This document shows positions 26,316 through 31,101 of a stretch of 64,000 nt of DNA, piece after piece. Source of the stretch: Trichosphaerium sp. ATCC 40318 (lineage: Eukaryota > Protista > Tubulinea); the NCBI GenBank assembly GCA_038496445.1, contig JALMLS010000478.1, forward strand, positions 1 to 64,000, in the 5' to 3' direction. Position 1 is the stretch's first letter, and the number at the start of each line of letters is the position of its first letter. The notes under the pieces were generated by a model. That model saw nothing but the letters and a program-made list of their open reading frames with translations. It was not told where the DNA came from and made no database searches. Made by a program: the position numbers and the translations under genes.

Positions 26316-29300
26316 TTATGTTACATGGTTGTAGTCGCGCCTATCTATATACGGTGCAATATTGCAGCTGCCAAAAGCTTTCCAAATAGCGACCAAAAAG
26401 TAAGGAAAGCGACTATGAAAATACCTCCAGATGCCTAAACACACCCAAAAGTTAATCACCAAATAACTATACAATCGCAAATAAGGATTGGTACCTGAGT
26501 AGCTCACCAACAGTTTGAGAATTGCCGGTTTATGTGACTTTATCTCTGCCCAGTGCGCTGATATATTCCTGATAGCACGCATCAAGTGCAGGTACTTATC
26601 AGTCTGGTAACCACGGAATCCTCTGAGGTGATCCCAAATTGTAGGATCTAGACGTTTGCTCCTGCGACTGTGTAAGTAGATTGAAACGATTTGGGATTAG
26701 TACCAGTCAATGAAGGGATCAATCTTATTACAAGCGCTTTCAAAATTATCAGCGACTTGGCCTTGCCTAGTGTCTAAAAAATTGCTGACATCTTGTACGA
26801 ACTCTAAGCACGTCTGTGGACGCCAAAACACGGGATAAGACGCCACTTCTGCTGTAGATGGCCTGTTCGTGCAGAATTGGTGAGACGATGCGAAACACTA
26901 GGATTTGCGCACCTTAAATCAGGGTTGTGACTCAACATCTGTTCCAGCAGAAATTTAAGCAGTGGATTTGTGTTGCTCAGTGATGGCGGCTTTACATCAA
27001 GTATATTAGCGTTGCGGTAGTGGCTAAAGGGGAGCACGTGTTAGCAGGCTGACCAACTAATAGCTAGAAATAACGGCGTACGTCCTGCCAAAGGGATGAG
27101 AGCCGCTCGTCCAGATGTAGTAAAATACGCATCCCAAAGAGAAAACATCAACTTTGACAGTCTTGCGATGTGCCTGTAGGATACGTCAGCTAACTTAATA
27201 CGAACAAGAAGTTAGTAGTGCCTTTAGGACCTCTACCGGACACCAACCGCCAGCCCCAGTTGGTGCCAGAGATGTGAATGTGTAAGAGCTTTGAGAGGCA
27301 TCTAGTCGTTTAGAGAGGCCCAAGTCTGCTAGTTTAAAGCTAATGAAATAATTAGTTTTTGGGATTGGCACTATTAATTAGCCTGGTGGATTGCTCAACG
27401 TACCGAGATTTATTGTACAGGATATTATAGGGGTTTATGTCGTTATGTACAATGCGAAGTTTGTGAAGGTACTATTCCAGCGTTAAGAGGTAGTAGGAGT
27501 GTAGGTTGGTGGATTTGATATGTTCGAAAAGAGAAAAAAAAAAAAAGAGATCAGTACCTGCACAGCATTTACAATGTCCTTCATCGCAGAAAGTTTGGTA
27601 GATTCAGAAATCTCAGTGTGGATAGTTATGTAGTCCGCTTTATGAAATATTTTTGTCAGAAGGTTGCAGTTACTAAGCGGTGAAAGTGAAAGTGACATAC
27701 CAAGAGTCATATCACACTTTTCAAGGGCTAGATAGACTTTTTCGTAATCTTCCTCCTTGCCGTAATATCGTACAATGGTAGAAGGAAGATCATCGCGTTC
27801 CATAGATATGTGCAGCAGGGTATCTATTTCGCTCGAGATATTAGGCCAGCACGCCTTTTATTCATGTTAACTAACTGGTCAAAGAAAGAAAAAAACACAG
27901 GTACCTTTATCAAACACTTGATAGCGCATTGAATGCGTCCATCGTACAGCCCTTCATATATAACAGTGCCATTGCTGCCGTGTCCTAATTTATCAATAAA
28001 GTCAGTATTCGCTGCATGGAATAGTTTTGGATTGTACCGATTATATCTTTGGTGCTCCACGACAACTTGCCGCACTTCATGTTACAGTATCCTGAAGCTT
28101 GAGGCTGTGATGGTTTTGACGTAGTCACTGGAATCACAGGTAACACCTTTTCGTGGCCATGTTCTTGAGTGCTCTGAATAGGCCTGTTCTCTCGCACACG
28201 CATGCGATGCGTCTGGCGCAGCTTGTCTTTCCATTCAGAACTCTTCGATTTGGGACCCAGCTTCCGCACACGCTGGTACTCTGCTGACTTGTGTGTTCTT
28301 CGTGGTTTGGCGTCCGCTGAAATGCGATAGCGTGTTTGTGATTTGTTGTGAGTCTTGGAGGTGGATATGGCTCCAGTACTCTTCCGCCTATCTTTAGTGC
28401 CTTCGCTGTGACTTCGGGAGAGTCCACCTCCACGCTTTTTTTTTCTTTTTTGCCGGTTGGGATTAGCCAATTCGTCCTGCAACAGACCATCCATCACCAA
28501 CTGCTGTTCCTTGGTCACCCGAGAGAGCATGTCCTTTGCTGCTTCTGCCTCTTCATCCTTTGTTGCAAGACGAACTGCCTTTTGAAAGTTCTCAATGGCT
28601 TGTGGAAGGTTTTTTTGTTTGTGATGTGCTTCTCCTAACAACGTTATTTAAAATGTGAAAAGTTGAGTTCGTCAATGCAATACAGAAACGAAGAGGTTGA
28701 TCCATACCTAAGATAAAGTGTACTTGGTACATTTTAACTACAGATGCTCTAGCGATGATAACTTCTACGTCTTCAATAGCCTCAAGCGGACACTCCATTT
28801 TGAGGTGTGTCCTTGCTCTACCAAGAAGTGCGGTAATTGCTTCTGGCACCAAGTCACCATCCTGAGCTAATTTAATTGCTTTTGTGTAGTGTTCCATAGC
28901 CTCTGGATATTTACCCAGAAGGAAATAAATATGAGCACATCCATTCAAGCCTGTGTATGGAACGGGGGACAGTTGTATAGATTTCTTGTAGTACTCTATC
29001 GACGCTGCATATTTTCCATTTGCAAACTTCTCTAATGCGAGTACATTCCAATCATGAGCTGTATGAGAGTTGTCGATTCTATCAAGACACGTTAAGAGGT
29101 AAAAAGGTTTAGGACGATGATTTTTGATTTAACATACTTTTGCAGTTCCGACAAGTACCAATTGTAATCTGCGTTTTCAGGGTCATTTGCAATTGCCTTT
29201 TTGTAGTCTTCGTGTGCTTTGCTGTACAATAATTTATCACGGTAAATATGCCCGCGTTGCGCATACCAAGCCTAAGATGTGTTAAAGGCAATTTATAAAT

Positions 29301-31101
29301 AAAAATAATGATACGTACAGCCTTGTTTGTATTTTCACTGAGTCGAATGGCCTCGGTAAAGTCAATAGCTGCTTTGTCAAGCTCATTTATGGCTGTGTAT
29401 ATGAGTCCACGTTGACCATAGTAGTCAGGTTGATACACGTCTATCTCTATCGCCTAAATTCAGTTCGTTTTAAGTACTACCCAACCACACGAATAGAAAT
29501 GCCACAAAGTACCTTGGTGTAGCCTTTTATCGCTTCCAAGTATTCTCCTACAGTATTGTACACATGGGCTCGCTCAGCATAGTAACTAGAGAAAAATGTG
29601 AACGTTTTTTGTACGGCACCAAAAGAGGTATGTTTGTACGTTGCATTATTTGGTGCTAACTTGATAGCATCCGTAAAGTCTTGCAGTGTCGCTGCAAATT
29701 GTTCTCTATTATAATGATACACACCGCGACACATGTACAGCGATGGGTCCTGTTAAAGATGTAAGAGATTGTCGTGAATTAAACAAAATGGAGTAGGGGC
29801 CAAGATACCGTTGGTTTGAATTCAATAGCTTTCGATATGTCTTGTAACGCTTTATCAACTTGCTTGATGTGATTATAAGCTGATGCTAAAGGCCAATAAT
29901 GTTAGCAAAGGACGAAAGAATAAGGTTTTACAAATACCTCTAGATGCATAGTATTTTGACATTCTGGGTGATAGCTTAATGAGCAAGGTAAAGTCATTTA
30001 TCGCTTTGTTATACTTGGACAGTTTGTGGTAAGCTTTTGCTCGTAGCTCATAATGGCGTTGTGTTTTAGGGTCCTAATATTAATTTAACATAACTAGGAT
30101 GTAACATTTGAGTCGTCAAGGTCATACAAGTTCAATAACTCGAGAGAGCAATTTAGAGCAAACAAAAGCATATTGCATCGAGCTCAGGTTTTTGCCAGTG
30201 ACCAGCTGCTTTATAATGCCGTCTAATGGCGGATTCGATTCCTGCAGTACATGTCAGTACAATTGTAAAGTACTACATGTAAGTGCGTACTACTAATGCA
30301 GTGTATCCGCCTTGTTTAATGCTATTGTACAGGAATAGTATAAAATTAGTGACACCATTAGGATATTCACCATTTAAGCAATGAAGAATTGCCAAACCTG
30401 TCATTATAGTATAAGCCATTTTTGGTCAAAAAACCATAAACGGTAAATATCAATATTTGTTGTACCAAACAGTAGTGAGTTTTCATCAGGTAGTAGTTCA
30501 ACAGCGAGAGCATAATCCTATTTTTGTATTAACAACAAACAATAATTTACTTTTGTCATTAAAATTAAATCACGTTTTTTTGTGCAAAGCCACATGCCTT
30601 TAATGCCTCTCTAAATTTGCCCTCGGCCCAATAAATATCGCCTCGCCCTGCTAAAAACCAGGGAGCGTTGGGAGTGAGCTGTATCGCTTTGTTGTAATCC
30701 CTTAACGCGTTCTTGTATTCCTAAACAGCGCTCACTTTTTTTTGACTCTGATGGCACTTTTGACAGGCAGTTCCTACGTACCGTGAGGACAAAATAGGCT
30801 TGTGCTCTGTTTGCAAGGTGGTTTGCTTCATGTGGTTCATCTTCAATCAGTGCTGAGAACAGCTGTACCGCCTCACGGCACTGTCTCATTGTGGCTACGC
30901 GAATAATTTAACATGAAGCATGTATGCGTGCTTGAAGTCTGCAAAATACGAACCTTCATCTGGTGGTCTATTAACTACGCTATTTAACGATGGTTGATCG
31001 TTAAAGAAGTCACCTAAGAGCCCAGGAGAGTTTCTATCAAAATATCTCGAAGAAATGTTTGTTTGACGAGTACGAGTCGATTTTGGTTGTTTTGGATTCA
31101 T
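26316..31101 (-). CDS. TPR-repeat + IRE1/RNase L-type kinase + KEN ribonuclease protein
   Basis: Roughly a dozen TPR units (e.g. [28 protein letters not shown]); kinase [23 protein letters not shown]...[54 protein letters not shown]; KEN domain FW...LEFVQDVSN...[15 protein letters not shown]...[10 protein letters not shown]. No signal peptide or TM helix seen. Confidence 0.9.

Follow-up and report, generated by a model that had tools for sequence, protein, structure and literature searches.

The stretch of DNA analysed here (the window) comprises 64,000 nucleotides of contig JALMLS010000478.1 (positions 1 to 64,000, forward strand; assembly GCA_038496445.1) from the amoeba Trichosphaerium sp. 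ATCC 40318. Reading frames and spliced RNA delimit on its minus strand an intron-rich, eukaryotic gene, the product of which is described in this paper. From the N-terminus, the protein consists of an array of tetratricopeptide repeats (TPRs), a basic linker, a kinase domain of the IRE1 family and a kinase-extension nuclease (KEN) domain (Table 1). An initial annotation of the window had placed the gene at the same coordinates and on the same strand, and had described these four parts together with the absence of a signal peptide and a transmembrane (TM) helix. The present analysis agrees: all four parts are carried by a single expressed gene without a TM or lumenal part. Three other proposals made there, namely kinship with RNase L, an inactive kinase and virus-sensing TPRs, fared less well, as described below.

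Table 1. Features of the TPR-kinase-KEN gene in the window
Feature	Position	Strand	Evidence or remark
Whole coding region	26316..31101	minus	24 exons separated by 23 introns (42-86 nt); product ~1145 aa
Start ATG; stop TAA	31101; 26318-26316	minus	gene model
Exon 1: hydrophilic, probably disordered N-terminus, aa 1-49	30955..31101	minus	translation and hydropathy
TPR array, aa 50-595, exons 2-14	28543..30954	minus	Pfam, HMM of the gene's own repeats, PDB matches
Intron 3, GC-AG, 80 nt	30518..30597	minus	RNA-confirmed
Exon 14: last TPR, whole linker and first kinase strand, 199 codons	28038..28634	minus	stop-free frame 28647..27988
Basic Gly-containing box in the linker, after the acidic helix	28423..28455	minus	sequence; collinear with RRQRKGKKGGKRRKK in L002
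IRE1-type kinase, aa 751-1006, exons 14-22	26838..28077	minus	motifs; P0001 against Ire1 structures, 6e-38
Catalytic loop HNDINPYN, aa 877-884	27424..27447	minus	HNDICPRN in P0001, HNDINPRN in L002
Intron 19, proposed GC-AG, 48 nt	27174..27221	minus	homology only, without RNA support
KEN domain, aa 1007-1145	26319..26837	minus	Pfam PF06479 and family alignment

The gene is transcribed and spliced. Four public runs were aligned to positions 26200-31200 (5001 letters). RNA contigs of 151 nt from X1 and X4 lack ten short segments, each bounded by CT..AC on the plus strand, which are the spliced GT-AG introns of a minus-strand mRNA. After the allowed slide of the junctions, nine of them have GT-AG ends and one has GC-AG ends, which gives RNA confirmation to 10 of the 23 introns. 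The introns are present in the contigs of X2, which thus behaves like DNA.

The last TPR, the linker and the first kinase strand share exon 14, and an X1 RNA contig maps within this exon (28039-28189). This sharing means that the TPR half and the kinase-KEN half belong to one gene. The residues at the end of exon 14, which form the first kinase strand, appear similar to those with which the kinase domain of human IRE1 begins.

The elements of a type I endoplasmic reticulum (ER) membrane topology, i.e. a signal peptide, a lumenal sensor domain and a single TM helix, were not found in the window protein. Its N-terminus is hydrophilic, with no signal peptide in translation or hydropathy, and no TM helix is predicted from protein hydropathy, the highest 19-residue Kyte-Doolittle mean being 1.31. 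A TM exon, which would make the protein an ordinary IRE1, was also looked for in the upstream frames and none was found. Whether or not a candidate intron in the 5' untranslated region is removed, stops in frame are met before the ATG, and for this reason no upstream coding exon can be joined in frame. The candidate intron (~44 nt, about 31155..31112, minus) reads cag/GTTAGTAC...TTTTATAG/gcc and lies immediately 5' of the ATG. Two codons before its donor there is a TAA in frame, so that the protein would not be extended. A minus-strand open reading frame (ORF) further upstream (31469..31287) contains a hydrophobic run. It was rejected as a TM exon: the run is translated poly-T, and the frame cannot be joined to the coding sequence.

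The N-terminal array was examined with a hidden Markov model (HMM) built from the gene's own units. Ten strong TPRs and one weak TPR of 34 residues were recognized, and degenerate helical repeats lie between them, so that the earlier count of about a dozen is a fair description of aa 50-595. Pfam matches to TPR_1, TPR_2 and TPR_11 were obtained on exons 3, 7, 11, 13 and 14. The match of exon 13 to TPR_1 is the clearest (E 8e-17; 60.7 bits against a cutoff of 27.8), and exon 3 reaches 39.6 bits with TPR_11 and is likewise above the threshold with TPR_1. Tandem 34-residue repeats that fit TPR profiles place the protein among the TPR repeat proteins (Pfam clan CL0020). Ank was not matched in any of the eight stretches scanned against Pfam, five of which came from the N-terminal array; only TPR families were found there, and the 2-5A-binding (2',5'-oligoadenylate-binding) N-terminal ankyrin repeats typical of RNase L were accordingly not seen.

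Among PDB entries, the nearest matches of exon 13 are designed consensus TPRs; BBS4, OGT, Pins, Hop and Tom70 come next, and IFIT is absent from this match list. The TPR exons matched no PADLOC defence model, and a scan of them against NCBIfam gave nothing specific. The carboxylate clamp that binds the EEVD end of Hsp70 and Hsp90 (K..GN) was not found in the TPRs, either by regular expression or by visual reading. The array is of the canonical protein- or peptide-binding type. The initial annotation had likened it to the TPRs that bind viral RNA in IFITs and phage proteins in bacterial Avs. Nothing in these matches indicates RNA binding of the IFIT kind or Avs-like recognition, and the analogy finds no support in the sequence.

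The array is followed, at aa 596-750, by an acidic helix and then by a strongly basic linker with a net charge of +23 over aa 601-745. The linker contains a basic box with Gly, flanked by acidic residues. In this it resembles the [+]-box of yeast Ire1 (K642-K658), which docks HAC1 mRNA (PMC4279078); the window box also fits a classical monopartite nuclear localisation signal (NLS). A collinear basic box, RRQRKGKKGGKRRKK, is present at ~3690-3740 of L002, a contig from a second organism that is described below.

In the kinase domain, the GHGSNG loop, the β3 lysine (K786), the αC glutamate, the catalytic D879, N884 and the Asp of the DxG motif (D896) are retained. Other positions are altered: HRD is changed to HND, the lysine of the catalytic loop to Asn, DFG to DLG and APE to PVE. 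At the motif level, the catalytically canonical HRDLKxxN and DFG are therefore replaced by HNDINPYN and DLG. The P+1 Thr of IRE1 (G-T-E-G-W) is an Ala in the window protein (G-A-G-G-W). The activation loop is rich in Ser, Thr and Tyr (SSYTFTS), and the other family members keep it in the pattern SSY(T/S)F(T/S)S. Exon 20 gives a weak Pfam Pkinase match.

It had been proposed that the domain is a pseudokinase, on account of the catalytic loop and of DLG. The loss of the HRD Arg and of the loop Lys is confirmed and speaks for this; the Gly loop, K786, the αC Glu, D879, N884 and D896 are kept and speak against it, which leaves the assignment uncertain. A-DLG is indeed present at residues 895-898. 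However, some active kinases, among them the TGF-β type I receptors, likewise have DLG for DFG, and no pseudokinase can be deduced from this change.

The kinase domain is directly contiguous with the KEN domain in the gene model, which is the architecture of the IRE1 family. Pfam PF06479 (Ribonuc_2-5A) matches positions 26319-26696 with an E value of 1.3e-11 and 45 bits (cutoff 23.3), even though the stretch was read through an intron. The catalytic set is complete, with Y1069, R1082, N1083 and H1087; the R-N-x3-H arrangement and the upstream Tyr had been recognized earlier. Y1069 precedes R1082 by thirteen residues, as in human IRE1. In the alignment, equivalents of all four residues are conserved in the relatives P0001, P0003 and L002 and in the canonical IRE1 fragments P0006 and P0007.

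Relatives were searched for exhaustively with HMMER, the query being the KEN stretch including 32 intron-coded residues. Five matches were obtained, three of them genuine (P0001, P0003 and P0005). The other two, P0002 (ankyrin-Roc, 2860 aa) and P0004 (a repeat translation), were rejected as false: only the intron-coded part of the query was matched. Because the query contained these residues, the low number of matches is no evidence of the family being rare. It should be noted that intron-coded residues drew unrelated proteins at E values of 1e-8 to 4e-6, which calls for caution with read-through queries from intron-rich genomes. Further family members were not found by word-indexed protein searches (with P0001 and with alignment A2), within length limits that left out full-length proteins; widening the word-indexed search to 425-1353 aa gave no family member and no annotated full-length protein of the window gene. 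A scan of viral contigs found no relative.

P0001 is a metatranscriptome fragment of 265 aa that shares 44% identity with the window protein across the C-lobe of the kinase and the KEN domain. It matches Pfam Pkinase and PF06479, and carries HNDICPRN, ADLGLSK and RAIRNLQEHW. P0005 is encoded by L002, a 9.6-kb contig from a different organism (GC content 50%), which was recovered when metagenomes were scanned with the family alignment. A three-frame reading of L002 gives the order TPR-like repeats, acidic helix, RRQRKGKKGGKRRKK, Ser/Pro-rich linker, kinase and KEN. Its kinase N-lobe is close to that of the window protein, with KACWP, MERDDLP and IVRYYGK common to both; HNDINPRN and ADLGLSK follow, and its KEN domain contains RAIRNLYEHW. 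The patterns HNDIxPxN, ADLGLSK and RAIRNxxxHW are common to P0001, P0003 and L002/P0005, and the motifs thus recur in transcript fragments of other samples. As judged from these readings, the TPR-kinase-KEN architecture is conserved in at least two organisms, with a repeat part that seems to diverge fast.

The initial annotation had called the protein RNase L-like. With the kinase-KEN part of P0001, structures of yeast Ire1 are found at 6e-38 and those of mammalian IRE1 at ~1e-29, and RNase L is not among its top 60 PDB matches. The family KEN domain alone (P0005) gives 4e-13 with yeast Ire1, ~7e-10 with human IRE1 and 0.13 with RNase L. The KEN stretch of the window itself gave nothing at E ≤0.01 in a phmmer search of the PDB; the cleaner homologues did match. 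Since P0001 and P0005 match Ire1 far better than RNase L, the window protein is an IRE1 derivative, and by sequence its family descends from IRE1. By matches, not by a tree, the kinase and the KEN domain fall outside the RNase L clade, and the name RNase L-like is acceptable as an analogy only.

The 13 introns that are predicted were placed by the open frame, by GT-AG or GC-AG ends and by homology to P0001 and L002. In building the model, the RNA-supported introns were fixed, short introns were preferred, and junctions were corrected by hand against the TPR periodicity and the IRE1 motifs. A model with the fewest introns was rejected: it passed over real exons. For intron 3, the X1 junction 30516/30597 can slide by up to three places, and a shift of one place gives GC..AG ends and joins GKFREALK into a complete TPR. 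When intron 19 is taken as GC-AG, the joined peptide equals GGWYAREILNGQRKTRSVDIFSLG of P0001 and GWYACEVLSEGRKTRKVDIFSLG of L002 in length. The GT donors GTCCTA, GTAGAG and GTTCGT were rejected for this intron, as each of them removes residues conserved in P0001 and L002. The donors AAG/GCATGT (intron 3) and AAG/GCACTA (intron 19) would make two GC-AG introns among 23, a high share within a single gene.

A divergently transcribed neighbour starts at 31659, 558 bp from the ATG, and the two genes may share a bidirectional promoter in the segment between them (31101-31659). Downstream of the gene are a fragment of an SH3-like ORF (24893-25399, minus) and a small Cys-rich ORF (25813-25953, plus) with a signal-peptide-like start, MKLFAVFALLIVVVCC... 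In L002, an EAP30/Vps22 (ESCRT-II) gene lies next upstream (623-1012; Pfam 6.4e-21). Nothing like it flanks the window gene, and the neighbourhood is therefore not conserved.

From these features, the window protein is probably a soluble paralogue of IRE1, in which an N-terminal TPR solenoid has taken the place of the lumenal sensor and the membrane anchor, and in which the basic linker, the kinase fold and the KEN domain were kept. By analogy with IRE1 and RNase L, the kinase fold would bind nucleotide and would serve chiefly as a platform for back-to-back dimerisation or oligomerisation. Assembly would form the composite KEN active site, and RNA would be cut so as to leave 2',3'-cyclic phosphates, as in these two enzymes. 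The TPR array might govern the assembly through a protein or peptide ligand or a partner, and the basic Gly-containing box might dock the RNA in the manner of the yeast Ire1 [+]-box. Candidate triggers would be a factor from a pathogen, a chaperone or misfolded protein of the cytosol, or a partner that is bound constitutively. The nucleotide- and Mg-binding residues and the KEN catalytic residues are all kept, and the most economical mechanism seems to be a latent RNase that is activated when the TPRs bring about assembly. It is possible, but on balance doubtful, that the TPR part is a receptor for a danger signal in the amoeba cytosol, either a pathogen protein or the loss of chaperone binding in proteotoxic stress, which leads to oligomerisation and RNA cleavage. 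The protein would then be an innate-immune RNase, or one of a "cytosolic unfolded protein response", convergent with RNase L.

Several observations weigh against the interpretation as a TPR-controlled IRE1 paralogue. No RNA contig spans the entire transcript, since the contigs are 151 nt long, and 13 of the 23 introns are predicted only. The single transcript joining the TPR and KEN exons, as assumed in the initial annotation, is thus borne out by ten confirmed introns and by the single open frame of exon 14, but not by a contig of full length. In addition, the lone X1 RNA contig over exon 18, which is of low depth, shows one C too many at a run of four C (27429-27433). This insertion would break the frame in the codons of the catalytic loop and place a stop right after HNDIN. 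The DNA run X2 (depth ~11.6) and the homologues match the window at this site; the extra C is probably an error of a low-depth contig, or possibly a strain allele. The TPR-like repeats of L002 are below the Pfam thresholds (best 2.7e-5). The N-terminal regions of the two proteins are collinear but only ~22% identical, from which it follows that the sensor part evolves fast or differs between species. The basic box could be merely a nuclear localisation signal. Finally, the kinase could be active, given its conserved activation loop rich in Ser, Thr and Tyr and its catalytic Asp, in which case the term pseudokinase may be wrong.

Some of these points bear on other explanations. The protein might be a housekeeping or compartment-specific RNA-processing enzyme, with the TPRs as a fixed scaffold, the KRKKKR box as an NLS and the KEN domain in constitutive processing or decay. 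The TPRs would suit such a role, being generic and consensus-like and nearest to those of scaffold and co-chaperone proteins; so would a basic box that has the form of a classical NLS and recurs in L002, and the lack of any defence-family signal in PADLOC. However, all characterised kinase-KEN proteins (IRE1 and RNase L) are latent and are activated by sensor-driven oligomerisation (PMC4718504; PMC4279078), and fast N-terminal divergence between the two organisms is more typical of sensor or conflict surfaces. A constitutive enzyme of this kind seems rather unlikely.

It is more improbable that the protein acts primarily as an active non-RD protein kinase, possibly of Tyr or dual specificity, with phosphorylation as the signal and the KEN domain in a secondary role. 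The catalytic Asp and Asn, the DxG Asp, the β3 Lys, the αC Glu and the activation-loop pattern are indeed kept. The P+1 Thr is replaced by Ala, a feature that was flagged in the soluble Dictyostelium kinases of the IRE family as compatible with Tyr substrates (PMC1420674), and P0001 and L002 have an Arg at D+4, like tyrosine kinases. The window protein, however, has neither the Lys at D+2 nor the Arg at D+4 (HNDINPYN). Furthermore, no family member has lost any of the four catalytic residues of KEN, which implies that the RNase is under selection.

An ordinary ER-membrane IRE1 with a missed TM or lumenal exon, or a chimaera of two adjacent genes, to which the predicted introns and the lack of an RNA contig covering the gene would leave room, is scarcely credible in view of the TPRs that fill the N-terminal 600 aa, the single open frame of exon 14 into the kinase, the in-frame stops before the ATG, the divergent gene 558 bp upstream, hydropathy that nowhere reaches TM level, and the collinear L002.

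To our knowledge, only IRE1 and RNase L are understood mechanistically among kinase-KEN systems, and in both of them a sensor domain drives the oligomerisation of the effector. A third, independently assembled pairing of sensor and effector would show that the kinase-KEN module can be rewired. The TPR-kinase-KEN protein, which is expressed in the window organism and conserved in at least two protists, would also provide a way into the study of the soluble IRE-like kinases in Amoebozoa, known since 2006 but without an assigned function. If the TPR array does sense infection or cytosolic protein damage, it would represent an RNA-decay pathway of defence or stress outside animals.

Soluble IRE-like proteins of Amoebozoa are an already known, uncharacterised class; what is new, within the searchable literature, is the fusion to TPRs. 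In a survey of HEPN proteins, the fusion partners listed for KEN are kinase, ankyrin, CCCH, ubiquitin and BRCT; TPR is not one of them (PMC3710099). Nor is TPR mentioned in the text of a 2023 paper on the origin of RNase L (PMC10400998). In agreement with the initial annotation, no description of a TPR-kinase-KEN protein was found in the searchable literature.

Compared with known systems, the best sequence match is IRE1/Ire1p (ERN1), in which a KEN domain with the Tyr/Arg/Asn/His set likewise comes straight after the kinase. The window protein has ~545 aa of TPRs where IRE1 has the signal peptide, the lumenal domain and the TM helix. The two differ also in the catalytic loop (HRDLKPHN in IRE1, HNDINPYN in the window protein), in DFG against DLG, in the P+1 Thr against Ala, and in the KEN signature, which is RA(M/L)RNKxHH in IRE1 and RAIRNxxxHW in the window family.

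As a class, the soluble IRE-family kinases of Dictyostelium are probably the nearest described relatives. Seven IRE-family kinases are known there, all with RNase domains, and six of them are not membrane bound (Goldberg et al., PMC1420674). Except for IreA, they lack a Ser/Thr at the position of PKA-201 (PMC1420674). The N-terminal domains and the functions of the soluble members are not reported in the searchable papers. The window protein, also from Amoebozoa, likewise combines an IRE-family kinase and an RNase domain with the absence of a membrane anchor and of a Ser/Thr at the PKA-201 position.

IFITs and the bacterial Avs/STAND proteins have a TPR solenoid fused or coupled to an effector, as does the window protein, which differs from them in having neither an NTPase switch domain nor any sequence affinity to them. 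The closest parallel in logic is RNase L. It is confined to jawed vertebrates and arose from a PK-RNase protein that gained ankyrin repeats (PMC10400998). It is latent until dimerisation is driven by its ligand (PMC4718504; PMC10400998), and its kinase fold binds nucleotide, is catalytically inactive and acts as a scaffold for dimerisation (PMC4718504). Both proteins are soluble and share an N-terminal α-helical solenoid, a kinase fold without the canonical catalytic-loop residues and a KEN RNase. The solenoid consists of ankyrin repeats in RNase L and of TPRs in the window protein, so that no 2-5A pocket can be deduced for the latter, and the likeness between the two is convergent.

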